From: Macrostomum lignano
Lineage: Eukaryota
DNA: 64,000 nt
Assembly (NCBI GenBank): GCA_002269645.1
Contig: NIVC01001957.1
Coordinates: 154,724 to 218,723 of the forward strand
Reading direction: 5' to 3'
The stretch's first letter is position 1, and every line of letters begins with the position of its first letter. The position numbers and the translations under genes are program-made. Below, one piece after another: positions 20,966-44,100 of the stretch. Under the pieces are notes generated by a model. That model worked only from the letters and a program-made list of their open reading frames with translations. It was not told the DNA's origin and did not search any database.

Positions 20966-21389
20966 GTGATACTCTTTTTAACTTGGCGATAATCTCTTTA
21001 TGTCGAGGAAGAGGATTTCTGAGTCCGAGTCTATGCATCATAAAAATTGTTTTTGATTGTAGTTTGCAGATAGCAAACAAAATACAATTAGAATTGCGCT
21101 TTCCTGAGTATCATATCGGCTAGCTGGATCCCATCAACCGGTATTGCATATAAGTTGATATTTATCGATTTGGAATTTTGCTGTTTACATTCTCATCTGG
21201 TAGATACTCGTGTGAAGCATTCCCTACTGCAGATGCTGAAAACTGTTTGCACTGCAGTTGAGGCACCAATCAGGGCTCTTGGAGACAATTAGCTATTAAA
21301 CGTTGTATAGCCTTTATCTGCTGAAGGTAACTATTTAATACTTGTCGATTTCAAAGTCCTCTTCTGCAGCCATCTTTCGGGAAACGAAA

Positions 21390-23569: not shown

Positions 23570-26500
23570 TCAGAAGCGCGTCTCCTCGTGGTAGCCCTGA
23601 TTGTCCAGCCCGTCCTCCGGCAGAGCTCGCAGGTGTCCGTCGTCGCCTCGACCGACTGCCGAGTCAAAACCGCTTGACCTGTGCCGGAGGTCCGGGCAGA
23701 GGTGCGCCGGATGATCCAGCGAGCTGTACTCCGGCAGAGACAGCTGCTGCTGCTGTTCGTCGTGCATCGAGTGAAGGTAGCCGCTGTATGCTTCCAGATG
23801 GCGGACACATTCACTTGGTCGTCGAGACGAGCCGAGGCCGTGTAGCGATGGGTCCTCGCCGGCGCTGTGGCTGATGCTGTAGGTCCGCGTCTGTCGGCGC
23901 CGCTCTCGAGCCGCGTCGTTGGCGTGCTGCGAGATGGACACTCGGCGACTGCGGGTTTGCGAGCGAGTTTGTTTGCAAGGAGCTAAAGCCCCTTGGTGCT
24001 AAAGCCCCTTGGTGCTAAAGCCCCTTGGTGCTAAAGCCCCTTGGTGCTAAAGCCCCTTGGTGCTAAAGCCCCTTGGTGCTAAAGCCCCTTGGTGCTAAAG
24101 CCCCTTGGTGCTAAAGCCCCTTGGTGCTAAAGCCCCTTGGTGCTAAAGCCCCTTGGTGCTAAAGCCCCTTGGTGCTAAAGCCCCTTGGTGCTAAAGCCCC
24201 TTGGTGCTAAAGCCCCTTGGTGCTAAAGCCCCTTGGTGCTAAAGCCCCTTGGTGCTAAAGCCCCTTGGTGCTAAAGCCCCTTGGTGCTAAAGCCCCTTGG
24301 TGCTAAAGCCCCTTGGTGCTAAAGCCCCTTGGTGCTAAAGCCCCTTGGTGCTAAAGCCCCTTGGTGCTAAAGCCCCTTGGTGCTAAAGCCCCTTGGTGCT
24401 AAAGCCCCTTGGTGCTAAAGCCCCTTGGTGCTAAAGCCCCTTGGTGCTAAAGCCCCTTGGTGCTAAAGCCCCTTGGTGCTAAAGCCCCTTGGTGCTAAAG
24501 CCCCTTGGTGCTAAAGCCCCTTGGTGCTAAAGCCCCTTGGTGCTAAAGCCCCTTGGTGCTAAAGCCCCTTGGTGCTAAAGCCCCTTGGTGCTAAAGCCCC
24601 TTGGTGCTAAAGCCCCTTGGTGCTAAAGCCCCTTGGTGCTAAAGCCCCTTGGTGCTAAAGCCCCTTGGTGCTAAAGCCCCTTGGTGCTAAAGCCCCTTGG
24701 TGCTAAAGCCCCTTGGTGCTAAAGCCCCTTGGTGCTAAAGCCCCTTGGTGCTAAAGCCCCTTGGTGCTAAAGCCCCTTGGTGCTAAAGCCCCTTGGTGCT
24801 AAAGCCCCTTGGTGCTAAAGCCCCTTGGTGCTAAAGCCCCTTGGTGCTAAAGCCCCTTGGTGCTAAAGCCCCTTGGTGCTAAAGCCCCTTGGTGCTAAAG
24901 CCCCTTGGTGCTAAAGCCCCTTGGTGCTAAAGCCCCTTGGTGCTAAAGCCCCTTGGTGCTAAAGCCCCTTGGTGCTAAAGCCCCTTGGTGCTAAAGCCCC
25001 TTGGTGCTAAAGCCCCTTGGTGCTAAAGCCTTGTTAACCTTGCAAACTGTCTTCTGTTTGAGCTTCTTTTGTCCACTGAAAAGTTCTTTGAGTACTAAAA
25101 CAGTCGTTGAATAGACAGTATAGAGCTGTCATATTTACATAGACACTTGCATGAATTACATTAGCTAAACTTTATGAAAGAGTGTTTAATAAAATATTAT
25201 TTCACTAATGTTCTTTCGTACTCGGATAAACTGACGCCGCTGGTTGATGCACCGCCTTGCTCGCCAATGCTGCTTCCCGTTTCATCCTGAAAATTATGCA
25301 GACACTTGTATGAATGTAAATTCCATCTAGAACGAGTCATGGACAGCTGAAGTAGAAGGACTCTCTCGAATCGTACGAATGTCACCGGTAAAAATGTTAT
25401 TTTTTATTTCACACCTGACCTAATGGGCAGATGTGCAACCGACAGCTCAGCCGCAGCTATTTGCGCGGCGCATCTGAAGGCAGCGTACGGCTGTTCAGTC
25501 CAAGGACTGGGGGCCGTCAACACACAGCCTCAACTACCCCAGCTCATGCTGGCACCCATTCTACAGCTGGGTGATTTAATTAATGCAGAGTTAAGTGTTT
25601 TGTGCTCAAGAAAAAAGGTCGAGAATCGAACCACCGACCTTTTGATCTAGAGTTCGACTCTCTAACCACTAGGCTACAACCCCTTCTACAACATTCAGAA
25701 CGCATAATAATTATAAATTGATAAACTCTATTTTGTCCGAGGTTGACTCAAAACTTACTCGAATTCGGAAGTTCAAAAGGTGAAAAATCACTAAAAACAC
25801 AAATAACTTATCAATTTGCAAATTCAGCGTCCTTCTACTTTAGCTATTGATTGCACAATGAACAATATTTCAGTAGCCTCTGCACCTCAACCAGCTCCTG
25901 GTAGAAATTGGACAGCGCGTAAATCACCGCGTCGTGGACGGTCACAAACAGACCAGCTTCGGAGCGCTTGTCGAAGAAGTTGGCCTTCCTCAGAAGCGAA
26001 CGGACAAGCGAAGTGCAGCCGCACAAGTACATTTCGACGCCAATTTTACTGAAATCGTCGACAATTTTTGTCAGCAGACGGACACCCACGGCGTCAATGA
26101 AGGCGCAGGCCGACAGGTCCAAGATGATACAGAAGACGTTTACAGTCGGCTCGCTTTCGTCGTCGCTATCAACGGAAGCTGGAAGATCAGCCGAATCGAT
26201 GGAGCCCATGGATTCGTACGACTTTGAGGCGGTGATTGGCAGGTTCTTGAGCTCCTCCGAGGAGTTCAACTGGGCGCGCTGGCGAGCTATGGCGCTCTTT
26301 TATGGCAAATAATTGGGGGAAAGGTTAAGTCACTTTGTAAACAATCTCTGGTTAGAAAGTTCGTTTTTTAGGGGGCAGACTAGTTTAAGCAATCAACTCC
26401 GACGTCCGGTTTTCGTGCCAAGGTACCCAGGTTCGATTCCGTGTGTAATTCTGCAATAATTTGAGACCCTGTCCTAAGGCATATCTCGGTAAAGTCAGGG

Positions 26501-29500
26501 TCGTATGTGTATACGCTCGTACCTGCGTACGTACGAGTATCTGTGTACGTGTGAGCGATTCGTGGTCAGAAGGGATGAGCATGATTGCTTGCCTCCTCGT
26601 TGGCGGTGGCTACGAAAAAACTTATTACTGAGACAGTACTGTAGTTCTCAATTTTTCTTAGGGCGAGTCTGGTTGCTTCCCGAATCCATGGTTTGACTTG
26701 GACGCGTCGATGTTAACTCGGTGTTCAAGGACAGTAATTACCTCGTATAGTTAAAGGTACAGTGCTTGACAACAACTAGGTCAGAGTTGTTGCAGACCAC
26801 GTGCTATTTTTGCATGTCTTCTTTTTTATCCCTGTACGTGTCCCTGAACGTGATTTCATGACTGTTGTATTGGTTTAACAGCATTAGCCCCCAGCGGAAA
26901 CGTAGACAGATTAACATGAATCCGTTAAATGATGATTGCAAAAACAATGTCGTTAAATTTACCGGATGACTTCCCTCTTCCTTGACAACTCCGAGCACTT
27001 CCTTGATGCCCTGGGCGTTGAGCACGTCAGTCCGAAGGTTCATATCGCCGCTAGCTCCTCCGCTTCGCTTGGCTGCGGCTTTAGCGCGTTCAAGAATCTT
27101 CTTCGGATTCATGGCCACAGAGCGGAATAGGCGCTTGCGAAAGTTGTCTGCGCTGGCGAAATAGAGCGAGCCGTCGAATTTGAAAATTTTCAGGCCAGGA
27201 ATTTCTTCGGCCTGAATAGTAAATATTTTTGGGTTCACGAATTTCAGTAAAAACGAAGTGTCGATTTTGTGCGAGGCCATGCTACTTTTTGGCTTGTACT
27301 ATTCTCAGCTGTTAAGAGTCAACCACTAGAGGCACTGTGCATTACACGACTGATGATAAGAGTTACCTAGTAAAGACTTTTACAGCTTGTGTGAGCGCTG
27401 GCCTGCGAATTTTCACTTTATTGTCTATGGTATCTATCCCTGTGCTCACGGACCGTCATGCTGTCCTGTTGACGTAAGTGGCCTAAGAAATGCATAGTGA
27501 CGGCAGCAACTACTAAGAGACTGAGCTACATGCTAGCACGACCGCTATGTACCAATCGTCTTACAATAGCCTCATCGGCTATAACTCGATATTTTTTTAA
27601 AGTTCTCTATGCTCTGAAACTCACCCCTTTAATCTTCTTAATGTTCTTATAAATGTCAGTTTTCGGCACTCGTCCCAGCAGGTAGGCCTTCGGAGCCTGG
27701 GTCCGATAAATGATGGTGAGCAACGAGAAGGCGACCCCGATTCCCAGACCGATGGGCAGGTCCAGACCAAGGATTGCAGCCAGCGTTACAATCCAAATTG
27801 ACTGTAATTACATGGGAATTCAACTAATTACAATCAATCATATTGTAAAAAGTAATAAACAGTGAAAGTACAAAGTCGTATCGATTGGTTCGCCACAGTC
27901 GAGGCAGTTGCTCCACTTGCAGGATCATGTTCTTCAAATTCACGATTATAATTGCGGAAAGTACGCACTGAAATTGATAATGCAATTATAATATAGGATT
28001 GCTCACTTGATCAGCAAATTATGGAATAGACTGCTGATAAACAGGTATTCACCTTGGGTACCGGCTCAAAATAGGAGCAAAAAGTAAGAATGCTGATTAG
28101 TGTAATTATTGTAGCGTAAACCGAATAGATCTGAAGTGCGAAATAAAATGGCACATTGTAAACGGCATAAGGTATTATTCCTAAATTATGACTCTTACGC
28201 TTGTACTTAAGGCAACTTTTTCTTACTAGTGTCTTTCCTCTCATGGACTCGTGCAGCGAGGTGCAAGCAATGGACGAGGCCGACACGAACGTGCTGAACC
28301 AGCTCATGCCGAAGTTGACAAATCCGTAGGCTAGGACCTCCTGGTTGGCGTCCACTTCATATCCGTGACGTAGAGCGAAGGTCTTGGCTACAGACACCGA
28401 CAGGGCATAGGAGATTATGCCAAGCACGATGCCGTTCACTAAAATTCCGGACCCGCTTGTGAAATGCTCCGGCAGTGGAGCGCGCGGCACCTCGAATCTG
28501 AAGTTAAATTTTGATGGGTCGCTTTTAAACCGGTGTCAGAAATGCGGTGTCAGATGGGTCTTAGCTAAAAAGTTCTATTTGCTTCACACACTGCCTTTTA
28601 CGAGGGGTGTTCCATAAGTCTTTTCCGTTTTGAGTATAGCTTAGGCTGTAAAGGTCTTATTGATGAACAGTCTTCGACGTTAAGAACTTTTTTCTATGCT
28701 TCTTTTGACACCAAAGTCATATTGAAGTGTCAAACCAACGCTCAACTACGCTCATATAAGTTTTGGCCGTAAATACCTCCTACTCTGTTTCATGTCTGCA
28801 TAAAAGTAACCCTGTCAATCGGATGAAAATGCGTAAGAGTCTTTTTAATCCTATACTGATGGATAAAGTCATATCCGACACTGACAAGCAGACTTTTCAT
28901 TACTGCTATGTTGAATTGTTTCTATTCGCTGCTTCTGTCAAAGTAAAAGACGTGTGGCTTTTTCTCACAGAGAAAGTTTTTTTAAATTTTAATTATACCT
29001 TTAAAAGAAGCGATAGATAACGGTGGCAAAAGTGGTATTTTACATTTTCCAAGCGCGGCTTACCCTTGTCGAATGACGCCAACATTTTCCACTTTAATAG
29101 TCCCCTTCCAATTCATGAACTGCGACATTAGAAGACTTGTAATCAACTGAAATCAAGTTATATTGTGTTTGTGTGCTTCTTATACTCGTATCTTCTCGTG
29201 GCTCGTAACAACAAATCAACGGTTTAAAAAAATAGCGCAAACCTTACCACAATGATGTCGATTGGAATTGGAATTTTCACATATTTAGAGCACTTCTCGT
29301 TCACCAGCTTGATGGCCAGCAGCAGAGCAAAGAAGGCTACGAAAATGCCGATTGTGTATCCGTTTACCTGACCCGTGAATAGCCTTTTGAATGCCTCGAT
29401 AAAGTACTAAATGGGGTTAGATGGAATACAAAAAACAGATGTAGACATCTCAACTTATAATACTGACAGAATGTCAAATACCAATTGATTAGGTTACATC

Positions 29501-32500
29501 TCAAACGAAACTTGAACAAGTCAACGCTATTGCAAGTTTGTGTCGATTAAAAACTAAACTAGAACGACACGGCTCTAAGAAATTAGTTTAATTTCTTAGT
29601 ATTTTTAGTGTCGTATCTGGACTACTGAATTAAAAAATATGTCCAAGTAGAACAACCATGTGTCTTATCCTACGTTGATTAACAAATTTGTCGAACCAAA
29701 GTTTAACAAAATTTTATCAAAGAGTAATAAGAAATATTTTTAAAGAAATTTTGTTCGAATTTCTTTTTGCAAACTTATTTAAAAAAGTAAATCTCAATTT
29801 AGTGAAAAAAACTATACTATGCGCGTTGAAGCTCCATTAAGTTTTCTTCAAAACTATTAACATTAATGAACTTGCGAATTAGGACCTCAGTAACTTTATT
29901 ACTAAAAAACGCTCACAATAGTTTACCTGACCACCTGCAAGAACCAAAGCCATTGCTACTCACCATGAAGAATTTCCCGTTGCCATTTATGGCCGGAATT
30001 TTCGCTCCGAGCAGATTGCCCAACTGACTGCTGACGATGTGCAGCGCAGCACCGCAGGTGAACGCGCTATTCAACGGATCGGACATGTAGATGGTGAGAA
30101 AGCCCAGCTGCAGAGCGCCCAGCAGAATCTGCAACAGGCCAGCAACCATGGTAATGGATAAGGCCACCATTGCGTTTGCGTCATCCCGGTTAATGCAGCC
30201 AGCTGGAAATGCGAGGGAAATTCCAGTTATGTTGATTTGACAGGCAAATACGCTTGAATATAATAGCCCTCTAAAAGTTTTTTCAAAATTTTTCTACATT
30301 AAAAAAAACTACCGTCGTCTACAGTTTTTCTATTGGTACAGCTCGACGATAAGTTGTTGAAGTTTCTTTAAAAAGGAATCATAATTAGATAGATTTCGCC
30401 ACTGATGTTAAAAATGCAAAGAAACCAACCTGTCGCTCCTGTCGTGACATTCGGAGCCGTAGTAACCAAAGCCATTGTTTTAGATTCGGTAGCAATGGTA
30501 GTTGATTCGTTGCCAGTATACAGACCAACATTAGAGACTGAGGCAGTTTCGCAGAGTCCAACACCATTGGGGTACACCTGTTGGACACCGGCTCGAACTG
30601 CTTCGCCAACAATTAGCGATACGGCGCCTTGACTTGCTAAAAATTAATTAGTTAATTCGATTTCAAGATTAGCGGTTGCATTGTGCATCGATGTTTACCT
30701 TTTAGGGATGCTAAACAAGCAATGCTGTTTTGTCTTTTTGGGTTGTTAATAAAATGACAACTCGACTGTCGATCATGACGGTTGGATTGTTGATGAGGTG
30801 ACGGTTGGATTGTTGATGAGGTGACGGTTGGATTGTTGATGAGGTGACGGTTGGATTGTTGATGAGGTGACGGTTGGATTGTTGATGAGGTGACGGTTGG
30901 ATTGTTGATGAGGTGACGGTTGGATTGTTGATGAGGTTACGGTTGGATTGTTGATGAGGTGACGGTTGGATTGTTGATGAGGTGACGGTTGGACTGTTGA
31001 TGAGGTGACGGTTGGATTGTTGATGAGGTGACGGTTGGATTGTTGATGAGGTTACGGTTGGACTGTTGATGAGGTGACGGTTGGATTGTTGATGAGGTGA
31101 CGGTTGGATTGTTGATGAGGTGACGGTTGGATTGTTGATGAGGTGACGGTTGGATTGTTGATGAGGTTACGGTTGGATTGTTGATGAGGTGACGGTTGGA
31201 TTGTTGATGAGGTGACGGTTGGATTGTTGATGAGGTGACGGTTGGATTGTTGATGAGGTTACGGTTGGACTGTTGATGAGGTGACAGTTGGATTGTTGAT
31301 GAGGTGACGGTTGGACTGTTGATGAGGTTACGGTTGGATTGTTGATGAGGTGACGGTTGGACTGTTGATGAGGTGACGGTTGGATTGTTGATGAGGTGAC
31401 GGTTGGATTGTTGATGAGGTGACGGTTGGATTGTTGATGAGGTGACGGTTGGACTGTTGATGAGGTGACGGTTGGACTGTTGATGAGGTGACGGTTGGAC
31501 TGTTGATGAGGTGACGGTTGGACTGTTGATGAGGTGACGGTTGGATTGTTGATGAGGTGACGGCTGGATTGTTGATGAGGTGACGGTTGGACTGTTGATA
31601 ATGTTTCGGTTGGACTGTTGATGGGGTGTCGGTTGGACTGTTGATGGGGTGTCGGTTGGACTGTTGATGGGGTGACGGTTGGACTGTTGATGAGGTGACG
31701 GTTGGACTGTTGATGAGGTTGGATTGTTAATGAGATGGCGGTTAGATTGTGATAATGTGACGCTTGGACTGTTTTTCCTATAGATTGAAATTCCAATTAG
31801 CTAGATGACGGTTCTGTCTCGTAATAAACCTTTTAAAAAATTTAGTAAGGCAGACAAATCAACTTACACATGTTGAGATGATTCGACGTCCCGAAGATAA
31901 AGTAGATCAGCATAGCAAAAAAGGCCGAATAGAATCCGTATTGCGGCTTCACGTTTGCCAACAATGAGAAAGCGATTGCTAAAATTCAACAAGGAAAAGC
32001 TTGACTTTTTAACGTCATTAAAATTAATTAAAGTGCTTTTTAAACTCACCCTGCGGAATGATGAACAGCCCAACGCTAACACCTGAAATAAGGTCAAACA
32101 CAGCGTACTCGCGAACTTTATAGTTGACAAACACGTTGATGCATGGAAACGCTTTGTTAAGAATGCCAATGGCTTTAGTTTTTATGTCCTTTTTCTCTTT
32201 AAATTGATTGGCTTTGCGTTGCTGCATCAAATTGAGCCGGTGCGCTTTGCGTTCGCTCGGTTCCAGACGAATCTGATACTCTTCTTCCAGCTGCACTTCG
32301 TTGTAGGTTGGCCTGGAAGCAATCGTTCCACCGCGTTTGCCGTCGCCTCCAGCGCCGCCACCGGCTGATGCCGTGATGGCTGCGAGATCCGTCAGCCTCT
32401 CGTTCGACATCTGCTTGCGAAGATCTCTGGGAATGTTGGCCAGGTTTCGGTTCGGCTGGCCGCCTCCGCCACCGCCTCCGCCGCCGCCGCCGCCATCGCC

Positions 32501-32530
32501 GCCACCGCCCCCAGGACGTCCCGAAGACAT
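23570..32530 (-). CDS. SLC26/SulP anion transporter with STAS domain, copy A, ~1001 aa; exons 32530-32050, 31978-31868, 30636-30430, 30202-29964, 29406-29248, 29146-29064, 28497-28227, 28130-28053, 27967-27872, 27801-27625, 27211-26963, 26296-25886, 25286-25222, 23948-23570
   Basis: Family motifs DLISGVSVGLFIIPQ, YGFYSAFF..LIYFIFGTS, GFLTIYMSDP, DANQE, KFDGSLYFASA, STAS ILDLSACAFIDAVG. Fourteen GT-AG exons sum to 3006 nt in frame; ends ETRF (PDZ-type). No one-to-one vertebrate orthologue is assigned. Confidence 0.93.
23983..25030. repeat. Perfect 16-bp minisatellite (CTAAAGCCCCTTGGTG), ~65 units, last intron of SLC26 copy A
   Basis: No variant units seen. Confidence 0.98.
25410..25683 (-). 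mobile_element. tRNA-derived CORE-like SINE (copy 2, more degenerate; SLC26 copy A intron)
   Basis: Collinear with 22238-22522; B box degenerated to GGTTCGATTCT. Confidence 0.78.
30775..31745. repeat. 23-bp minisatellite (GATGAGGTGACGGTTGGATTGTT), ~42 units, intron 2 of SLC26 copy A
   Basis: Tandem units; source of spurious ORF 31167..31796. Confidence 0.96.
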
Positions 32531-32628
32531 GTCAAATTTGTTAGAATTTTCCCAGTTTTCCAAAATTAATTCACTCGATGCTCGGATTCCTGGGGAATGG
32601 TTATAAAAGGGGATGTGAACTTAAGAGT

Positions 32629-33195
32629 CAAAATAAAGCCCGAAATACACGGTCCCGATTTCTCTAAGCCAATCCCTTCATCTGGAGCCAAATTGCTCCC
32701 ATTATGCCGAAAACGCGACCACCGTAGCATTTGGGGATCTCTACGCTCTTATGGGGAGAAATGGTTGTGAGGGAGCTTATAGCACCTTTGACCATGATAT
32801 AAATGTGCTATTTATGTCTCCACAGAGACAGGGAAACACAATGAGAGCTTGGCTGGGGGCAACAGCATAAACAATGTTGAGATAACATAATGGAGGGAAT
32901 AAAATAACATTACTATCGCTTTTATTCATCATACTAACACATAAAAAGAGCGTTTATCCTGGTCTTCTCGTCATATAAGCATTTGAAGCTCCAAATGAAG
33001 GTATTGGCATAGAGAAACCGGGACCCAATGCTTCATGCTCCATTCTGGAGCCTTAGTTTAGCTCACGTGAAATCCTCATTTATTCGTTTCTCCCCATAGA
33101 GATCCCCAAATGCTAAACCGGTTGGTTTTTGGTGGTCAGGAGCAATTTGGCTCCAAGTAGAGAAATAGGGACCGTATATTTCGGGCTTCATTTTG
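32629..33195. mobile_element. MITE/foldback-like element with long imperfect TIRs, ~100 bp upstream of the SLC26 copy A start codon
   Basis: Left CAAAATAAAGCCCGAAATACACGGTCCCGATTTCTCT..GGAGCCAAATTGCTCC..TAGCATTTGGGGATCTCT..ATGGGGAGA matches the reverse complement of 33090-33195. No clear TSD. Confidence 0.8.
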
Positions 33196-33699
33196 GCTAT
33201 TCTGTTTCAACAATAGCCCTTAATTTATAATGCTAACAACCTACCATCTTATCCAACAACAACTTACCCAAACAGTAGTAACAGCCAGATCTCGGAATCG
33301 TCCTTCGAAAGAATCAACTCTTCTACTAAGACGAGGCTAGAAAAATCAGCTATTTAGAGTCAGAAAAATGGAGAAGAGATCAGGCCTAATTAAGCACCGG
33401 AAGAGAATGCAAAACAATTTGCTGCTTTAAGACCTGTGAAACTTGTTGGAATTAGCTGACTCTGTTTGCCTGTGCCAAGCTCTGTAATAGCTAATGAATT
33501 ACCGGAAAAGAAAATAGTAATCAAGCGCGTTTAGCACTATCAGACTTTATGGTTAACCGTTGAATTTCCAATATCAATACCAATTTTCTGAATCACTGAG
33601 TTCGTCGGTTTTGACTGATTGCAATTGGCAAATGTGTCTTTAGAATTGAGTCAGGAAAATGTATAGAAAATGGGGTATGTTGAGAGGCATGCTGAATTT

Positions 33700-35080
33700 T
33701 CATCTGAGGGGGCGCCAGTTCATCTGAGGGGGCACCAGTTCATCTGAGGGGGCGCCAGTTCATCTGAGGGGGCGCCAGTTCATCTGAGGGGGCACCAGTT
33801 CATTTGAGGGGGCGCCAGTTCATCTGAGGGGGCGCCAGTTCATCTGAGGGGGCGCCAGTTTATTTGAGAGGGCGCCAGTTCATCTGAGGGGGCGCCAGTT
33901 TATTTGAGAGGGCGCCAGTTCATCTGAGGGGGCGCCAGTTTATTTGAGAGGGCGCCAGTTCATCTGAGGGGGCGCCAGTTTATTTGAGAGGGCGCCAGTT
34001 CATCTGAGGGGGCGGGCGCCAGTTAATCTGAGGGGGCGCCAGTTCATCTGAGGGGGCGCCAGTTTATTTGAGAGGGCGCCAGTTCATCTGAGGGGGCGCC
34101 AGTTTATTTGAGAGGGCGCCAGTTCATCTGAGGGGGCGCCAGTTTATTTGAGAGGGCGCCAGTTCATCTGAGGGGGCGGGCGCCAGTTAATCTGAGGGGG
34201 CGCCAGTTCATCTGAGGGGGCGCCAGTTCATCTGAGGGGGCACCAGTTCATCTGAGGGGGCGCCAGTTCATCTGAGGGGGCGCCAGTTCATCTGAGGGGG
34301 CACCAGTTCATCTGAGGGGGCGCCAGTTCATCTGAGGGGGCGCCAGTTTATTTGAGAGGGCGCCAGTTCATCTGAGGGGCGCCAGTTTATTTGAGAGGGC
34401 ACCAGTTCATTTGAGGGGGCGCCAGTTCATCTGAGAGGGCACCAGTTCATCTGAGGGGACGCCAGTTCATCTGAGGGGGCGCCAGTTCATCTGAGGGGCA
34501 CCAGTTCATCTGAGGGGGCACCAGTTCATCTGAGGGGGCGCCAGTTCATCTGAGGGGCGCCAGTTCATCTGAGGGGGCACCAGTTCATCTGAGGGGGCGC
34601 CAGTTCATCTGAGGGGGCGCCAGTTTATTTGAGAGGGCGCCAGTTCATCTGAGGGGCGCCAGTTTATTTGAGGGGGCACCAGTTCATCTGAGGGGGCGCC
34701 AGTTCATCTGAGGGGGCGCCAGTTTATTTGAGAGGGCGCCAGTTCATCTGAGGGGGCGGGCGCCAGTTAATCTGAGGGGGCGCCAGTTTATCTGAGGGGG
34801 CGCCAGTTTATTTGAGAGGGCGCCAGTTCATCTGAGGGGCGCCAGTTTATTTGAGGGGGCGCCAGTTCATCTGAGGGGGCGCCAGTTCATCTGAGGGGGC
34901 ACCAGTTCATCTGAGGGGGCGCCAGTTCATCTGAGGGGGCGCCAGTTCATCTGAGGGGCGCCAGTTCATCTGAGGGGGCGCCAGTTCATCTGAGGGGGCG
35001 CCAGTTCATCTGAGGGGGCGCCAGTTCATCTGAGGGGGCGCCAGTTCATCTGAGGGGGCGCCAGTTCATCTGAAGGGCAC
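33700..35080. repeat. GC-rich 20-bp minisatellite (GGGGGCGCCAGTTCATCTGA), ~69 units
   Basis: Tandem units with a TTATTTGAGAGG variant. Confidence 0.96.
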
Positions 35081-35724
35081 TATTTTATTGGAGAGGGCGC
35101 GCCATTTAATTTGACGGGACGCCATTTGCAAGAAAGCGTATTGCATTGCGACCGAAAAAAAACGAATTCACCAAGCTGTATGTTTGTTTTAATCGCAGTC
35201 AAATTTTCTCAACACCGACAACTGTAACCGAGTTTTGTAGAAGGGGCTGCTGTTTCTGCAACTCAGTTGCTTATTCGTCGCCAAACTAATTTTGGCTTCC
35301 CGTCAAAAAGTACCGCTTGCAAAGGGGCAACGGCTTGCTGCTTCATTAGCAAATTCGACGTATTCTGCTCAATGCCTTGACTTTATTGCATTCTTTCTTA
35401 TAAGTCAACCCCTACGTGCTTAAAACCGAGAACAGCGAACAAGCTGATAAAACTTTGACGTTCGTCCGACGTTCGGTTTGGGTTTAAAGTAGAAAAACTT
35501 TACGATATAAACTGCATTCAAGATAAAGACAGTGAAGCAGAACTCCCTGATCAGGACTTGGTCTGTGAGCCTTACTGACTGCTTAAGAATGCACTAAAAG
35601 CAGTCACGGTTCACCCTCATGGTCATAAGATCGAACGCTATTTGAAGTTTCCAACAAAATTATATCGCCTTTAAATTGCCTAAAAAAGAAGAACATCAAA
35701 AAGTTAATTAGCTGAAATACTTAC

Positions 35725-36699
<975 letters not shown>

Positions 36700-37189
36700 C
36701 TTCCCTTTAACGCCCATAGTGAGTCATGCGTGTGGCACGGAGGTTCAGTATTTTTCAATAGCCTTCAAAGGGAGTAGCCGTTCAGATACGGTAGACGCCA
36801 AAGGCTGGATGTCGAGCAGGCATATTATGACTTTTACTTGCCAGTCACCAGTGGGCAATGCATTATCGTTTTCTGTCTTATCAGCTTAGGGCGCGAGTTT
36901 TACAGCGCAGAGATAGATAGCGCCCCAGCAAGCTTGAGGTCACAAAAGCGCATAAATAGAATGAAGAAATGAGCGCAATGCCAGAAACGCTATCAATTCG
37001 TGCTGAGCACTTAATCGGAATTTTTTGTTATCGACTTTGAGCAAAGCCTGAACGTCGAGCATAACGGACCGAATTTGATTGCTGAGCAGTGGAAAACAGA
37101 AGGACGACGGCTTACACACTGTTTTGCTTAAACCAAGTCTTTCTTCTCTTGAAACGATCGAGGTAAGTCGAGTAATAATGTGAACGGTC

Positions 37190-38072
37190 CGTAACGAATT
37201 CTAATGAACTCTTGATGATGGGATTTGAATGTAATCTATCGAATTCTAATGAACTCTCAGTGGGATTCGAATGTAATCTATCGAATTCTAATGAACTCTC
37301 AATGGGATTCGAATGTAATCTATCGAATTCTAATGAACTCTCAATGGGATTCGAATGTAATCTATCGAATTCTAATGAAATCTCAATGGGATTCGAATGT
37401 AATCTATCGAATTCTAATGAACTCTCAATGGGATTCGAATGTAATCTATCGAATTCTAATGAACTCTCAATGGGATTCTAATGTAATCTATCGAATTCTA
37501 ATGAAATCTCAATGGGATTCGAATGTAATCTATCGAATTCTAATGAACTCTCAATGGGATTCGAATGTAATCTATCGAACTCTAATGAACTCTCAATGGG
37601 ATTCGACTGTAATCTATCGAATTCTAATGAAATCTCAATGGGATTCGAATGTAATCTATCGAATTCTAATGAACTCTCAATGGGATTCGAATGTAATCTA
37701 TCGAACTCTAATGAACTCTCAATGGGATTCGACTGTAATCTATCGAACTCTAATGAACTCTCAATGGGATTCGAATGTAATCTATCGAATTCTAATGAAC
37801 TCTCAATGGGATTCGACTGTAATCTATCGAACTCTAATGAACTCTCAAAGGGATTCGAATGTAATCTATCGAATTCTAATGAACTCTCAATGGGATTCGA
37901 CTGTAATCTATCGAACTCTAATGAACTCTCAAAGGGATTCGAATGTAATCTATCGAATTCTAATGAACTCTCAATGGGTTCGAATGTAATCTATCGAATT
38001 CTAATGAACTCTCAAAGGGATTCGAATGTAATCTATCAAACTCTAATGAACTCTCAAAGGGATTTGAATGTA
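37190..38072. repeat. 42-bp minisatellite (GAATGTAATCTATCGAATTCTAATGAACTCTCAATGGGATTC), ~21 units, just upstream of SLC26 copy B
   Basis: Tandem units; ends ~70 bp before ATG 38143. Confidence 0.95.
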
Positions 38073-38142
38073 GAGTTCGATCTCAGAATGACCAAAAAAT
38101 GATTCCATCATACTTATTAATACTCAAACAGAAGCGACAGCC

Positions 38143-41100
38143 ATGACGGACAAAGACTTCAGGAGGCCAAGCGTCGCCTCCCTCAGCGAGTTGCGCAACC
38201 AACTGCCTGACGATCTTCGTCAGCAGCAGAACTCGCGACAGACCGCGTCGAGGCCAACCTACACGGAGGTGCAGCTGGAGGAGGTGCACCAAATCAAACT
38301 GGATGACGACGAGAAAATCCGACACAAGAAGCAGCTTATGGAAAATCGCAAGGCCGGCCCGAAAGAAGTCCGTAGCAAAGGCGCCGTGGCTTTGGGAATA
38401 CTGAGTAAAATATTCCCCGTAATTAAGGTCTTCGTCAACTACAAAGTCAAAGAGTACGCGGTGTACGATCTCCTGTCAGGAATTAGTGTGGGAATGTTTA
38501 TCATTCCTCAAGGTGAGCGGGGTTACTACGGTTTCTAATAGCTAATGTATTCACAGATGCCACTATTTACTGTCGTCATTGACAACTGACGTAGAAGGAT
38601 GCTAACACGTTCAATTTCTTAGAAATCTGCACTGGAAAAATCTGATTTCTTAGCGTCCTTCTTTATCGGTCTTCAGTTAATACTAACACCACCATCACCT
38701 ATTTCAGCCATCGCTTTTTTCCCTGCTGGCCCAGGTGAAGCCTCAATACGGTTTTTATTCCGCTTTCTTTGCCATGCTGATTTACTTTATTTTCGGCACC
38801 TCAAATCATCTGAATATGTGTAAGTTTGACGCCTGCTATTTCAATTTTTATATGCTCTTGGAGATAGAAATCTGACAAGGAAGCTGCGTGTACTATCGAT
38901 TGGTGACTTCTCTGCTTTTCAAGTCTCCGTGTCTGTCACTCGTTTAACAGGTGACTTCTCTGTATCTAACAGGTGACTCCTCTATCTAACAGCTGACCCA
39001 TCTGTGTCTAACAGGTGACTCCTCTGTGTCTAACAACTGACCCCTCTGTGTCTAACAGGTGACTTCTCTGTGTCTAACAGAGTGACTCATCTGTGTCGAA
39101 CAGTTGACTCATCTGTGTCTAACAGGCGACTCCTCTGTGTCTAACAGGTGACTCCTCTGTGTCTAACAAGTGACTCCTCTGTGTCTAACAAGTGACTCAT
39201 CTGTGTCGAACAGTTGACTCATCTGTGTCTAACAGGCGACTCCTCTGTGTCTAACAGGTGACTCCTCTGTGTCTAACAAGTGACTCCTATATCGGGTGAC
39301 TCTCAATTTAATGAGTGATTGAAAAAAACCAAAAACGTCTGCTCACCGCCAACCAACCCCCAATTCAGCCAGTCAAGGTGCCGTTTCGCTCCTGGTCGGC
39401 GAAGCTGTGCTGGCTGGCGTGGAACAGGTGCACCCTAACGGGGCCGGGATCTGCGTCGAGCCTAACGACACCATCACCACTTTGGGGCCGAATCTGAACT
39501 TCACTGATCTAACGACTGAGATGACGACAACTTTGCTGACGACTACAATGGATATGATTGGAATTAACAGCACCGCTAGTAAGGAAAATTCCTGTCTGGG
39601 TTGGGTCAGATATGCCTCAGATAGAAAGTAATAAAAATTGCTACTTACCCAAATTGAAACTGGTTCTTAAAGAAAAATTATTTTGTCGTCAATCCCAGAC
39701 CCAGACATGTGCATCCCCCGAGCTGACGCCAACACTCTGGTCTCAATATCCATCACCATGGTGGCCGGAGCTGTCCAATTGCTGCTCGGATTGCTGCAGT
39801 TCGGCTTTCTCACCATCTACCTGTCCGATCCGTTGAACAGCGCGTTCACCTGCGGGGCCGCTCTGCACATCTTAAGCAGTCAATTGGCCAACATGCTCGG
39901 CACGACTCTCCCGCCAATCTCGGGTGTTGGAAAATTCTTCGTGGTGAGTCACGTTTGAATTGGTTTTGGCTGCTAGGATATAGCTCGTAGAGCTGGGCAA
40001 CTTGAGCAGTTTGCTCTTATGTCGGTCAGTGTACATTGGCAAATTCTCTTAGCTGTCAATGCACCGCGTCCCTATTTGGTTTATGATAATCTAAGAAGAC
40101 AACCAATTAGTTATTTGTCCGGCCCTTTGCTTCGTTTCAGTACTTTGTAGAGGCGTTCAAACAGATTTCTGCCGGAAACGTAAACGTGGCATCGATCATA
40201 GTATGTCTGGTATCTTTCGCTGTGCTGCTAGCTGTCAAGATAATTAACGAAAAATGCTCAAAGTACGTCAAGATTCCTATTCCAATCGACATTATTGTGG
40301 TGAGTTTTGCCAACATTTTCTTATTTTTACACATAAGGAATTCTTAACACGTCATAAATTTTCTATATGGTCAAGAAAATACTTGATGCTCGTAGGTTGC
40401 CAGAGATTAGATTAATTCTATGAATACCAAGGACATCTTAAAGAAGTCAAGGTCGTCTTTTGATGTCAAAAAATGTCTTAAGATGTTAAGGACGTCGTAG
40501 GATATCGTCTTAGGATGTTAGGGACATATTAGGCTATCAAAAATTTCAAGGTCTTAGGATGTCAAGAGTGTATTAGGGTGTCAAGGATGTCTTAGGAGTT
40601 CAAGGATGTGTTAGGATGTCAAGAATGTTTTAGGAATTCAGGGATGTCAAGATGTTTTAGAATGTCAAGAATGTCCAGGATATCTTAGGATGTCAAGGAT
40701 GTCAAGGATGTCTTAGGATATCAAGGATGTCTTGGGGTCGCAAGGACAAAGATGTTAAGGATATCTTAGGATGTCAAAGATGTTTTAGGACATCATCAAG
40801 AGTGTATAAAACGACTTTAAAGACACATAATCATTTCGATCGAAAACGTTTCACTGTGGTAAAACATTTAAAAACATGATCCACTTGCTTCTCAAAACGC
40901 TAATTAAGCTTGTGACGAGTTTGCTGCTGTCACAGTTTCTGAACTGGGAAACCGAGCTAGATATTTCAACTGTCGGAGCCATTGAGAGAGGGTGAGCGAC
41001 TTCTTTGAATGTTTTTACTGTAATGCTCCATCAAGGCGCATTTACAATAGCTTGAAGTTCCTACTTAAAACGAACCTTCAGATTCCGGGCACCTACCGCT

Positions 41101-44100
41101 CCCCCCGTTGAGCACTTCACCAGCGGAACTGGGATCATAATTAACGGCTTGGTACTCGGTATTATATCGTACTCGCTCTCCGTCTCTGTCGCCAAAACTT
41201 TCGCCGTTCGATACGGCTACGAAGTGGACTCCAACCAGGAGATGATCGCCTACGGCGCTGTGAATTTTGGCATGAGCTGGTTCAGCACCTTCGTGTCCGC
41301 TTCGTCTATCGCTTGTACGTCGCTGCACGAGTCTATGCGAGGCAAAACTCTGGTAAGTGCAGTATACGAATAACGAATAACGGTGTTGTAACGGGTCTTG
41401 TAACTTTAAACTGCCGCGTGGAGCTGAGCCAATTAGCCCCGCCGATAATATTTTTGTAGTCCCTCTCTAGATGAGAGAAATCCTTGGAACCTTTACTGCA
41501 GAATAACCACCAGAATAACATCTGAGTATAGTTTTTTGAAAATATAGGCCTGTCTGCTGAATTTTCTAGATAACATCTACAATAAAATACATGAAATGTA
41601 CAGTATAATGTACAGTAGAGTCTTCTTACAAAGACAAAACGCTGCCTTCTAAGAAAGTAAACGCTTGCGTAGCCGTGTTAAAGTGGCAGCGATAGTCTAT
41701 GGCCAGGCTTATGGCCAGCCATGGTTAAAACAAATCGAATAATCAATTCAATAATAAATCATAAGTGAGAGAGTCGCTCGTTTCATTGTCAAAAATCAGC
41801 CTTTAGGATAATGCAATCGTCTATGGTTAAACCATGAGCACATTTATTTATTTTTTCACTTAAACTTCAGGATAATGATTTCAAACTCGGGATAATGGAC
41901 ACCTATTTTTAGAACAAAACAGCAAACACCAACAACAAAAGATTAGCGCTATGGAAAGTTAATTGTGCAGTATCAATATGGCGCAATTGTCATAGTGCCG
42001 AAGACCATTACAGATTGCAATTGTTGAAAGTGCAGTTGTTCATAATAAAGATATTCCGACCGTTCATCTGACGACCATCAGACACGCTCACTGCTTCTTG
42101 CACGATGGAACTTTGGATGCTGATGTCAGCAGGCATTGTTACTTGACCGTGGGTCGCGGCGCTTTGTCCCATGTTCAACGCACGCGACACTGCATCGCTG
42201 CATTGTTGCAGGGACTTGTCCCGTTTAACTGCCAGGTAGCGCCGGACCGTGCTCTCGGACTTTTGACCCGTGATAGCCATGATCTCGCTCATCGAATGCC
42301 CAGCCGATTCCAGGTCTCAAGAAAGTGCAAGAAGTTCAAAAAGTCTTCGTTATCCTTCATGTCCTTCTGAGATGTGGAAAGTCTTGAGATCCAATTGAGT
42401 TTGCTGCTAGATACGTTGGCTAAACTTTCGACAGGCAGATTGCCCCAGTTGATCGGATATGACGTCTGGTTCTCCATGGCCAAGCGAATGTAGCTATTTA
42501 CGTTTTATTCTCTCTTTCTCTCCACATCTCCTTCCTTTCCACCCTCTTAACCCCCAGCCTGTTTGCAACTTCGTTGTCTATGGCCCAAACTCCAGTAAAC
42601 CACCTCAGTATTTATGTCTCTCTCTCCTCGGTAACCCCTCTCTCCTTTCGATGCCCTTTTTGTCTATGGCCCCACTGAAATTCGACAATGCAGTTACGCG
42701 CACGAGTGAGCATAGGACTATTATCCTAAAGTCTCACTTACGAATAACCAACCAATGTTGTATCTTGTACTCAATTGTACTCAGTTATGAGGATCCGTGC
42801 AGAGAAATAGATGCCTGAGAACCTAACGGCACAGAGATTTTACAGACCTAGCAAGCAAAAAGTCAAAGCGCTCTACACATGTGTGTTTATGGGTCAGCGA
42901 AATGCGTATAACTACACTCGAACTTGCTTAATCATGGGTTTATTAATAATCAAGTAATATTATATCGTAATTGGAACAACGCTTTTAATGAATCATCTGC
43001 ACTTTTTAACGATAAGTAGTTTAATCATATATCTTTTAAATATATGCGCCCACTTCCAGCTCTACTCGCTCTATGCAACGATAATCACCTTAGTTGGAAT
43101 TCTGACTTTCGCTCCGGTGTTCGCCCCGGTTCCAAAGGTAAGCTATTGAGATGTAAGCTGCAATGTACTCAGCAAACAATTGATTTCTGTTTTCTTATTC
43201 TAGTGCGTCTTGTCAGCTATCATTTTGGTTAATCTGAAGAACATGATGATGCAAGTTGAACAGCTGCCAGGACTCTGGAGAACTAATCGATACGATTTTG
43301 TGAGTTAATGTTTTTGTACTTTTTCGTACTTTTTGTTCGATTTTTAGAGCAGGTAATGTTTAGTCCAATGTCGAGAATATCGCCTTAGCGTTTGAGGATA
43401 TCAGATCGCGGTAGCAACACTATTGTATTCCGGTTCAGTTCTATGAGAGCCAACCCCGAAGGCGTAGACTCACAAGGGACGGCAAACTCCCGCACATGCG
43501 GCCCGTAAAGCCTCTATCCTTTGAGACTTAAGAACAGCCTGTGCCTCTTATCAAATCTCTTCTCCCCTCTTCTGTTTTCTTTTCTCTCCTCTCGTCTTCT
43601 CTCCTCGCCTCTCCTTTCTTCTCTCCTCTTTTCTCTACTCTACTCTCTTCTCTTTCCTCTTCCCTCCTCTCCTCTCGTCTTCTCTATTCTCCTTCAATAC
43701 CCTGCCATTCCTTTCTCCTATATCTCTTATCTCTTCTCTATTTCCCTTTCTTTCTCCTCTCCCTTTCTGGCCCGCAGTCATGCACTAGGTTCTCTATTTG
43801 GCCCTTGAGGTAAAAAAGTACTCGTAATTTTTAACTTACACTTTCTACGATGAACAAGTCAAAGCAGCAGTACATCCCATGAGAGCGTGTGTCCGCGTGC
43901 TTATCTGTGTAGGCGTGTTGGCGTGCAGTCTCAGGGGGTCATCGGAATGGGCATGCGTTTTAATTAGCCGTTATTCGAATCAGGGCCCCAAACCCTCTGC
44001 AAGCCAACTACACCAAGCCAACCACATCAATTATTAGAAAATGACACCTGTAGTATTTCCAATTTCGATATTTAGGCCATCTGGTTGGTGACTCTGGCAG

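Follow-up and report, generated by a model that had tools for sequence, protein, structure and literature searches.

A head-to-head pair of SLC26 genes in Macrostomum lignano belongs to a flatworm clade with a remodelled anion pocket

Results

Locus and gene models

The analysed window, the terminal 64 kb of Macrostomum lignano contig NIVC01001957.1, carries two SLC26 genes arranged head-to-head (Table 1). The exons of the minus copy were mapped with the protein P0001, a 97% identical allele or homeolog of this copy, and gave a coding sequence of 3006 nt that stays in frame and in which every junction is GT-AG; exons 2 to 15 of the plus copy were mapped with P0006 at 100% identity. The deposited annotation of the contig (P0342) comprises residues 635-1001 of the minus copy and nothing more. 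The best database matches of both genes are M. lignano proteins, and the two encoded proteins are 62% identical overall. The region between the start codons is largely made of minisatellite arrays, which Tandem Repeats Finder placed at 33699-35077 (20 bp, 69 copies), 35725-36699 ((ATAG)n, 244 copies) and 37195-38072 (42 bp, 21 copies). The SLC26 pair at the homeologous locus (L004) is likewise head-to-head. The window pair consists of anciently duplicated, divergently transcribed anion-transporter genes of the SLC26 (SulP) family.

Table 1. Positions of the two SLC26 genes and of their pocket-coding segments in the window
Feature	Position	Strand	Details
Minus copy, gene	23570..32530	-	14 exons, intact ORF, 1001 aa
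Minus copy, exons 1-7	32530-32050, 31978-31868, 30636-30430, 30202-29964, 29406-29248, 29146-29064, 28497-28227	-	
Minus copy, exons 8-14	28130-28053, 27967-27872, 27801-27625, 27211-26963, 26296-25886, 25286-25222, 23948-23570	-	
Plus copy, gene	38143..46951	+	15 exons; 993 aa with one T of T6 run skipped
Plus copy, exons 1-8	38143-38512, 38708-38819, 39369-39578, 39699-39943, 40141-40299, 40909-40991, 41082-41352, 43060-43137	+	
Plus copy, exons 9-15	43204-43299, 44076-44252, 44658-44906, 45080-45454, 45806-45870, 46055-46409, 46814-46951	+	
Intergenic region between start codons	32531..38142		5.6 kb, largely minisatellite arrays
T6 homopolymer, plus copy exon 2	38715..38720	+	one base over reading frame
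Plus copy, TM1 motif I-P-Q	38503..38511	+	Q97 equivalent; end of exon 1; F101 equivalent in exon 2
Minus copy, TM1 motif I-P-Q	32051..32059	-	Q160 = Q97 equivalent
Plus copy, FGTSNHL	38792-38812	+	
Minus copy, FGTSNHL	31895-31875	-	
Plus copy, exon 3 start	39369..39379	+	CC (completes Ser198-equivalent) AGT(S) CAA(Q) GGT(G); Q-G codons 39374-39379; prestin 135-138, TM3 half-helix N-cap
Minus copy, exon 3 start	30626..30636	-	CA AGT(S199) CAA(Q200) GGC(G201); Q-G codons 30631-30626
Plus copy, TM10 segment FSTFVSASSIACTSLHESMRGKT (FSTFVSASSIACTSL+HESMRGKT)	41281..41349	+	A-C codons 41311-41316: Ala 41311-41313 (S398), Cys 41314-41316 (R399); Arg 41338-41340 (G407)
Minus copy, TM10 segment, same peptide	28230..28298	-	A-C codons 28268-28263: Ala504 28268-28266, Cys505 28265-28263; Arg513 28241-28239

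At 112 nt, exon 2 of the plus copy exceeds its 111-nt counterpart of the minus copy by one nucleotide, which a T6 run accounts for. As assembled, the plus copy loses its frame after IPQ-AIAF, and therefore its deposited protein (P0006) begins MLIYFIFG. An initial annotation of this DNA had read IPQAIAF in both copies; this holds for the minus copy, whereas in the plus copy it requires one T to be skipped.

Family membership and predicted fold

Both copies are complete in their SLC26 architecture, with a Sulfate_transp domain of 14 helices and, after it, a STAS domain. Sulfate_transp (PF00916) was detected at 2.6e-82 in the minus copy (277 bits against a cut-off of 23.2) and at 5.3e-68 in P0006, and the C-terminal cytoplasmic STAS domain (PF01740) at 3.9e-17 (minus copy) and 2.2e-15, in a region that aligns with the STAS domains of solved prestins; a phmmer comparison with solved prestin gave 9e-135. 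The AlphaFold model has pLDDT >90 over the TM and STAS domains and <50 over the long N- and C-terminal tails, which are divergent and of low complexity. Its target-normalised Foldseek TM-scores were 0.88 for prestin and 0.84 for both SLC26A6 and SLC26A9, with a range of 0.75-0.88 when pendrin and SLC26A3 are included. The model predicts the 7+7 inverted-repeat fold, in which the TM3 and TM10 half-helices meet with their N-termini at the substrate site: both are short, spanning 196-213 and 498-506, with beta bridges before each, Q195 sits at the TM3 N-cap, the helix starting at the Gly after this Gln, and A499/C500 lie in the first turn of TM10. The basic residue at the start of TM10 (R399), which is typical of SLC26/SulP proteins, albeit not universal, is absent, and both genes have Cys in its place.

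Pocket motifs in the two copies

Both copies encode FGTSNHLNM/SSQGAVSL across canonical GT-AG junctions (at the slash) and SASSIACTSLHESMRGKT inside a single exon. The TM3 junction is of phase 1 in both, with AAT or AAC, ATG and T before GTAAGT on the donor side and CC or CA, AGT, CAA and GG after TTCAG or TTTAG on the acceptor side, and reads NM-S-S-Q-G-A-V-S-L. The Q and G codons are internal to exon 3, so that Q-G is independent of the choice of junction. Among other in-frame GT-AG pairs at this junction there is only one; it drops two residues (HLNIQGAVSL) and leaves GPF absent. In TM10, the A-C pair is encoded centrally within an exon of 271 nt. No alternative junction that would bring back GPF, named beforehand among the findings that would overturn the altered pocket, was seen in either copy. 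The TM10 exon, exon 7, ends in each gene at one of the two limits given in the initial annotation, 28227 in the minus copy and 41352 in the plus copy.

When aligned by HMMER with the solved structures of prestin (7v73) and pendrin (8sgw, 7wk1), the pocket segments show no gaps, and SSQ falls on G135-P136-F137, I-A-C on L397-S398-R399 and the new Arg on G407. This agrees with the mapping onto the prestin pocket made earlier by eye, whose list of pocket residues matches the published one (bioRxiv 10.1101/2021.08.06.455374), and locates in both paralogs the claimed SSQ for GPF, AC for SR and Arg at the G407 position. Also as claimed, the alignment columns show Q97, F101 and E374 retained (Q160, F164 and E480 in the minus copy).

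The altered pocket marks a flatworm clade

In the NJ tree the altered pocket marks a clade with bootstrap values of 95 and 93, each of its subclades having 100; its nearest neighbours are placed with bootstrap ≤10. The members are at least five M. lignano paralog groups, which take in the window pair and several others, Smed-slc26a-1 of Schmidtea mediterranea and sequences from four contigs. All of them have Q137/G138 together with C, V or A at 399 wherever these positions are covered. The clade is flatworm-specific, and its members have a remodelled central pocket, flanked by the half-helix N-termini of TM3 and TM10. Thus the proposed lineage-specific SLC26 subfamily is recovered; the altered pocket, described as a feature of two paralogs, is indeed present in both, but it is the signature of a wider flatworm clade that includes Smed-slc26a-1.

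Among 146 close SLC26 representatives outside the clade, none has Q at position 137, and 142 carry a basic residue at 399 (R in 141, K in one), a contrast that exceeds chance. The statement that the Arg is kept in most SLC26s and replaced by a hydrophobic residue in SLC26A9 proved accurate (R/K in 142/146; Val in SLC26A9). In the same set the Q97 column has Q in 131, the 101 column Y or F in 135 and the E374 column E in 143 of the proteins. Vertebrate paralogs without the Arg were also seen, with Thr in SLC26A10 of fish and Ser in a pendrin-like protein of Discoglossus.

Within the clade, the Phe-Ala of the TM3 N-cap (prestin 137-138) is Gln-Gly throughout, and Ser133, before TM3, is replaced by Asn, Val or Ala, with V in subclade 2. 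Ala at 398 and R/K at 407 occur in the window's subgroup only, the rest of the clade having S or T and G, respectively. From the aligned sequences, what distinguishes the clade is Q137 with G138 and, at 399, a small residue without charge (C, V, A), and neither Cys specifically nor S398A. Of the AC pair first singled out as the altered site, only the missing Arg at 399 is clade-wide. The new Arg at the G407 position was correctly noticed in both copies; however, in the AlphaFold model it lies just beyond the end of the TM10 half-helix, outside the pocket, and being also limited to the subgroup it is unlikely to substitute for R399.

Selection on the pocket

The 23-aa TM10 stretch is identical between the copies although 12 of its 23 codons differ synonymously. 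Between the two genes pS is 0.72-0.79, a saturated value, and dN amounts to 0.045 for TM1-TM3, compared with 0.215 for the TM domain. With synonymous sites saturated and dN this low in TM1-TM3, the pocket is under purifying selection, which on this codon evidence is strong; purifying selection on the altered site had been proposed from the TM10 identity, and the synonymous differences without amino acid change, together with the low dN, bear it out.

Discussion

Comparison with characterised SLC26 proteins

The best-scoring characterised relatives of the window genes are SLC26A6, SLC26A5 (prestin) and SLC26A4 (pendrin), which share with them Q97, F101 (or Y), E374 and the STAS domain. At the TM3 cap these proteins have G-(P/T)-F-A and in TM10 S-R, whereas the window genes have S-S-Q-G and A-C, and so lack the pocket Arg on which coupled exchange in SLC26A6 and nonlinear capacitance in prestin depend. 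In SLC26A6, Arg404 contacts residues before alpha3 and forms the back of a shallow pocket, while SLC26A9, with Val393, has a deeper pocket of low field (PMC10328499). The R404V substitution in SLC26A6 abolishes coupled Cl-/HCO3- exchange and brings a Cl- flux that is slow and uncoupled (PMC10328499); in prestin, R399V does away with nonlinear capacitance and confers a small Cl- conductance, and SLC26A9 V393R is inactive (PMC11078650). The single R-to-V swaps resembled SLC26A9 only weakly, and their authors underline that the transport mode is not set by one residue (PMC10328499, PMC11078650). The flatworm clade has had the same guanidinium removed from the same pocket, but R404V and R399V are single swaps in otherwise canonical pockets, whereas the clade pairs the Arg loss with conserved changes at 98, 133, 135-138, 402 and 403 that are maintained by selection.

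SLC26A9 resembles the window genes in its fold and in having no charge at the R399 position, where it carries Val393 (V also in P0172, the platypus/echidna representative); with subclade 2 it shares Val at position 133, and with the contig-derived clade members the pre-TM3 motif GG..LVPG. It differs in having Phe-Ala at 137-138 and Ser at 398, where the flatworm proteins have Gln-Gly and the window genes Ala, respectively. Identity to the clade is about 25-29%, P0172 is not its sister in the NJ tree, and the best non-flatworm matches are SLC26A6 and prestin. Since the clade does not group with SLC26A9, any likeness would be convergent, and since SLC26A9 retains Phe at 137, Gln-Gly is without characterised precedent and selectivity could shift in unpredicted ways. 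Smed-slc26a-1 (UniProt A0A0H3YF67) falls in the same clade as the window genes (subclade 2, bootstrap 100) and shares Q137/G138, the lack of Arg at 399 and the LHES motif, but it is about 32% identical to P0001, has S398, A399 and G407, and is known from in situ expression, given as 'Gastrovascular system; Gut' (Vu et al. 2015, eLife 4:e07405, supplementary file 1).

Proposed function and its alternatives

By analogy with SLC26A9, loss of the guanidinium would deprive the pocket of its back wall and of much of its positive field, and the Gln amide would introduce a polar hydrogen-bond donor in place of the aromatic lid of other members. Taken with the published structures of other members, the flatworm sequences suggest a substrate site that would be deeper, less electropositive and more polar. 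Small anions would most likely still be moved by the usual elevator mechanism. The expected activity would be uncoupled (electrogenic, SLC26A9-like) and/or re-selected transport of monovalent anions rather than tightly coupled Cl-/HCO3-/oxalate exchange; uncoupled flux appears the most reasonable guess, drawing on the published R404V and SLC26A9 data. Voltage-motor function would not be expected with Cys at 399, given that prestin R399V has no nonlinear capacitance. The reading as a whole, a pair of SLC26 genes with a remodelled pocket, uncoupled and/or re-selected anion transport, no motor and a frameshift in the plus copy that is an assembly error, has in our judgement somewhat better than an even chance of being right.

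The sequences point to the clade as a conserved natural variant of the SLC26 pocket, in which the near-universal Arg is gone and Phe is replaced by Gln. More tentatively, the lineage may have lost the Arg independently of vertebrate SLC26A9 and, with its Gln-Gly cap, formed a new type of SLC26 site with channel-like, uncoupled anion flux or a non-canonical substrate, which then came to be represented by at least five Macrostomum groups. If this is true, the flatworm clade would be a natural, selection-tested counterpart of the R404V/R399V engineering.

The main competing possibility, which we regard as doubtful yet deserving serious weight, is that the proteins are still coupled exchangers in which the Gln amide, the helix dipoles and backbone amides replace the Arg and only preference or affinity has shifted, e.g., toward another oxyanion or a larger organic anion. 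The conserved Q97, F101, E374 and whole core/gate architecture are consistent with this, as are the clade-invariant change being a polar hydrogen-bond donor at the TM3 N-cap, the failure of R404V alone to make a fast channel-like SLC26A6 and the existence of the Arg-less SLC26A10 and pendrin-like paralogs of vertebrates. Against it, R404V abolished measurable Cl-/HCO3- exchange in SLC26A6, and Arg or Lys is present in nearly all other representatives and Arg in all compared exchangers with solved structures.

It is improbable that the T6 run is real and the plus copy a pseudogene, with function left to the minus copy and the intact copies of the homeologous locus. The deposited assembly does contain the frameshift, and the protein deposited for this locus lacks its N-terminal part, but the lesion is a lone 1-nt change in a homopolymer, no further stop or frameshift occurs in 2982 nt, and dN/dS relative to the minus copy is much smaller than 1. 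Moreover, the homeologous locus has T5 within otherwise identical sequence, and P0220, a model from an older independent assembly that carries the diagnostic residues of the plus allele, reads IPQAIAFSLLAQV in frame. The frameshift is most likely an assembly error.

Still less probable is that transport was lost and the clade acts as a sensor or regulator (transceptor-like or through STAS-mediated partners) or as a prestin-like voltage motor. The pocket does lack the residue most often required for anion handling, and the long tails of low pLDDT could mediate interactions; however, the whole TM core, including TM1, TM3 and TM10, is strongly constrained, as is typical of an active site in use, SLC26A9 transports well with an Arg-less pocket, and the R399V result makes a motor role without the Arg unlikely.

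We give almost no credence to the altered motifs having arisen artefactually, through misjoined exons or gene conversion between the copies: although one S codon straddles the exon 2/3 junction and the older model P0220 takes another acceptor and omits 12 residues, Q-G and A-C are each encoded within an exon, GPF is not recovered by any alternative junction, a motif of the same length occurs in intron-free contigs (P0080, NMTNQGAVSL) and in the cloned planarian cDNA of Smed-slc26a-1 (GAQGVVSL), and the 12 synonymous differences within the identical TM10 peptide exclude a recent conversion.

Gene models at the locus

The top protein matches of the window were all from Macrostomum lignano. Window positions 28774-56951 agree at every base with 183497-211674 of NIVC01001957.1 (GCA_002269645.1), which makes the window the final 64 kb of that 218,723-bp contig. 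Annotated M. lignano proteins were mapped onto the six-frame translation with a k-mer diagonal mapper, followed by a search for in-frame GT-AG pairs; this superseded tblastn with default culling, which had missed several exons. The minus copy of the head-to-head SLC26 pair has an unbroken coding sequence. In the plus copy, a T6 run lengthens exon 2 to 112 nt (minus copy, 111 nt), and the assembled frame is lost directly after IPQ-AIAF; with one T removed, no further defect was found across 2982 nt. Since the run is T5 at the homeologous locus NIVC01000268.1 (L004), where the sequence is otherwise the same, and P0220, a protein from an older independent assembly, carries the plus-allele diagnostic residues with the frame intact, the T6 run is most likely a homopolymer assembly error.

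Public databases list the gene products as hypothetical proteins or STAS-domain proteins; the planarian relative, Smed-slc26a-1, is a named gene. The deposited plus-copy protein (P0006, 848 aa) starts at MLIYFIFG, just past the frameshift. For the minus copy, the deposited annotation on NIVC01001957.1 holds only a 390-aa C-terminal piece (P0342/PAA62261.1, residues 635-1001), and the entire transmembrane domain is without annotation on this contig. In P0220 (UniProt A0A1I8HB94) the plus-copy protein is joined to an unrelated WSC-domain N-terminus, and an internal acceptor drops 12 residues, SQGAVSLLVGEA, the start of TM3; these are probably gene-prediction errors.

Coordinates of the SLC26 genes, neighbouring features and clade members on unattributed contigs
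Feature	Sequence	Coordinates	Strand	Description
Minus SLC26 gene	window	32530..23570	-	14 exons, 3006-nt CDS, 1001 aa
Plus SLC26 gene	window	38143..46951	+	15 exons; 2982-nt CDS, 993 aa once one T removed
T6 run	window	38715-38720	+	plus gene, exon 2
P0220 internal acceptor	window	~39369-39410		exon 3
UNC80_C-domain gene	window	~52700-56951 and beyond	-	downstream of plus SLC26 gene
Very large minisatellite array	window	1902-10622
Very large minisatellite array	window	19207-20970
Very large minisatellite array	window	23982-25030
Very large minisatellite array	window	30776-31773
Very large minisatellite array	window	33699-38072
Very large minisatellite array	window	38945-39288
P0062 gene	L001 (ERR14224705)	556-2892		uninterrupted ORF, apparently genomic contig
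P0292 gene	L006 (DRR639838)	4160-6607		uninterrupted ORF, apparently genomic contig

The anion-binding pocket is altered in both copies

The initial annotation had aligned the TM1-TM3 and TM10 segments to prestin by eye, using a list of pocket residues. That list is the one published for dolphin prestin, the quoted peptides are in place in both copies, and the gapless alignment was borne out by phmmer against all PDB chains, which mapped both segments to prestin and pendrin with SSQ at G135-P136-F137, I-A-C at L397-S398-R399 and Arg at G407 (prestin numbering here and below); Q97, F101 and E374 are retained. The TM3 motif spans a phase-1 junction with a strong consensus in both copies (ATG T/GTAAGT ... 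YAG/CM AGT CAA GG), giving NM-S-S-Q-G-A-V-S-L. The Gln and Gly codons lie within exon 3 and the Ala-Cys codons in mid-exon 7, and these residues are therefore independent of junction choice. Alternative splicing restoring GPF or SR, named in the initial annotation as an objection, was followed up on the in-frame GT-AG pairs: the single other pair at the TM3 junction loses two residues without giving GPF, and none restores either motif. Independent evidence for the spliced form came from P0080, encoded on an intron-free contig of another sample with HVNMTNQGAVSL, and from the planarian protein Smed-slc26a-1, whose motif is of equal length.

Distribution of the altered pocket

HMMER, run exhaustively over 1.84 billion representatives, gave 13,071 family members, and the best 150 were aligned. 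In the profile search with alignment A1, fish SLC26A6 sequences predominated and members of the flatworm clade described here were absent; a single-sequence search with P0062 returned them. Among these best 150 of 13,071, 146 proteins fall outside the clade; at position 399, 141 of them have Arg and one has Lys, and the others have Thr (2), Ser (1) or Val (1), in agreement with the prevalence of Arg given in the initial annotation. Val belongs to a monotreme SLC26A9, Thr to a fish SLC26A10 and an unattributed contig, and Ser to a frog pendrin-like protein. In the same set, Gln at 137 is found in 0/146 (F 75, M 27, others), and Gly at 138 and 135 in 5/146 and 135/146, respectively.

The combination of Q137-G138 with absence of the Arg was found in both window genes and their alleles, in P0002/P0003, P0070, P0084, P0294, P0295 and P0338 (all M. 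lignano), in the Schmidtea mediterranea protein Smed-slc26a-1 (P0293), and in P0062, P0292, P0096 and P0080 on unattributed contigs; P0096 begins past TM3 and P0080 stops before TM10, leaving one of the two pocket features visible in each. The tree that the initial annotation had called for (neighbour-joining, 647 well-occupied columns) placed the window genes in one Q137-G138 clade with a bootstrap of 95, or 93 with added sequences, divided into two subclades at 100 each. Subclade 1, the window's group, so far consists of Macrostomum sequences and the P0080 fragment only, and subclade 2 of M. lignano paralogs, Schmidtea and unattributed contigs. Subclade 2 includes a macrostomorph and a triclad, two lineages separated by the deepest division within Rhabditophora, and the altered pocket would therefore be older than this division. 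The rewired pocket ascribed to the two paralogs is thus real in both, but it also occurs in other M. lignano paralogs and in Smed-slc26a-1.

Diagnostic for the whole clade are Q137, G138 and three further residues outside the pocket. Position 399 is C, V or A, while Ala at 398 and R/K at 407 are limited to subclade 1. Canonical Arg-bearing SLC26 genes, e.g., P0061, are also kept by M. lignano. Elsewhere, the pocket Arg is replaced by Thr in P0097 (cod-family fish SLC26A10) and P0111 (unattributed) and by Ser in P0115 (Discoglossus pendrin-like), so that the Arg has been lost several times among animals; all three keep Ser133, with Phe137 in P0097 and P0115 and Thr in P0111.

The unattributed contigs derive from ERR14224705 (a Tara Pacific coral long-read metagenome), SRR7686494, SRR30276804 and DRR639838. 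P0062 and P0292 stem from an intron-poor eukaryote, possibly coral-associated, whose protein groups with planarian Slc26a-1. On L006, the clade gene adjoins an uninterrupted CCDC113/CCDC96 ciliary gene.

Predicted structure

In an AlphaFold2 model of P0001, an allele or homeolog 97% identical to the minus copy, built on an 83-sequence alignment, pLDDT exceeded 90 over all TM and STAS domains, and Foldseek gave target-normalised TM-scores of 0.75-0.88 to prestin, SLC26A6, pendrin, SLC26A3 and SLC26A9. The modelled TM3 half-helix starts at G196, making Q195 its N-cap, and the TM10 half-helix covers 498-506, which sets A499-C500 in its first turn. The new Arg reported at G407 does map there by phmmer, but R/K is limited to subclade 1, and R508 of P0001 lies in the model directly past the TM10 helix end, off the pocket. 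Its minus-copy counterpart, Arg513, is for these reasons, including its lack in subclade 2, unlikely to substitute for R399.

Age of the duplication and selection

The window proteins share 62% identity overall. Synonymous sites between the copies are saturated (pS 0.72-0.79), indicating an old duplication, with dN of 0.045 in TM1-TM3, 0.215 in the TM domain and 0.6-0.9 in the tails. The TM10 stretch has 23 identical residues, 12 of whose codons differ synonymously, which rules out recent gene conversion as the cause of the identity and substantiates the purifying selection proposed earlier for the altered site.

Functional implications

In SLC26A6, R404 contacts residues just N-terminal of helix 3 and so closes off the back of the site, which is shallow and electropositive, SLC26A9 has Val at this position and a deeper, low-field pocket, and SLC26A6 R404V loses coupled Cl-/HCO3- exchange and shows slow uncoupled Cl- flux (PMC10328499). 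At position 133, 124/146 of the other representatives have Ser, SLC26A9 and subclade 2 have Val, and the window genes have Asn; together with absence of the Arg, this is consistent with loss of the Arg-to-pre-TM3 contact. The clade pocket would then be deeper, less positive and, owing to the Gln, more polar, and uncoupled or re-selected monovalent-anion transport appears the most likely activity. The main rival reading, coupled exchange with shifted selectivity, would have to accommodate the R404V result; were the proteins ordinary exchangers, the finding would shrink to a lineage-specific sequence variant. A motor role is disfavoured, as nonlinear capacitance is lost in prestin R399V, which acquires a small Cl- conductance (PMC11078650). 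The converse mutant, SLC26A9 V393R, is inactive (PMC11078650).

P0062/P0292 resemble SLC26A9 (P0172) before TM3 (GGSKHLVPGAQ and GGVHQLVPGTF, prestin columns 127-137) and share its Val at the R399 position; as overall similarity ties them to no SLC26A9, the sequences suggest convergence. In both window genes, Asn takes the place of the FGTSRH Arg (FGTSNHLN; minus-copy residues 193 and 196) at prestin position R130, where 111/146 other representatives have R/K; prestin R130S was reportedly used in a published motor-kinetics study. The SLC26A7 structure paper does not mention the Arg position.

A single SLC26 fold underlies coupled exchange, uncoupled channel-like transport and motor function; the most thoroughly studied switch is the pocket Arg, at which single-residue swaps give the SLC26A9 phenotype only weakly. 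The flatworm clade is a second, apparently independent animal lineage lacking it, and its co-evolved changes at 98, 133, 135-138, 402 and 403 form a ready test set for coupling and selectivity. As a laboratory model, M. lignano is tractable and amenable to transgenesis and RNAi. The deviation at this site is real and maintained by selection; its functional meaning we so far infer. The clade's single biological datum is expression of Smed-slc26a-1 in the gut/gastrovascular system (Vu et al., 2015, supplementary file 1). In the genome annotation of M. lignano, this expanded group of transporters, gut-associated in planarians, is truncated or mis-annotated. Literature searches on planarian slc26a-1, Mlig gene identifiers and flatworm SLC26 found no functional or structural treatment or pocket discussion of these genes.

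Neighbouring genes and repeats

The order SLC26(-)/SLC26(+)/UNC80(-) is also present at L004, and the inverted pair is therefore older than the M. lignano genome duplication. The window is rich in minisatellite arrays, one of them 21 bp x415 (8.7 kb). The last intron of the minus gene contains a perfect 16-bp x66 array, and intron 2 holds arrays of unrelated units in the two copies (23 bp and 22 bp). Nearly all of the 5.6-kb promoter region that the two genes share consists of arrays, among them (ATAG)n x244.
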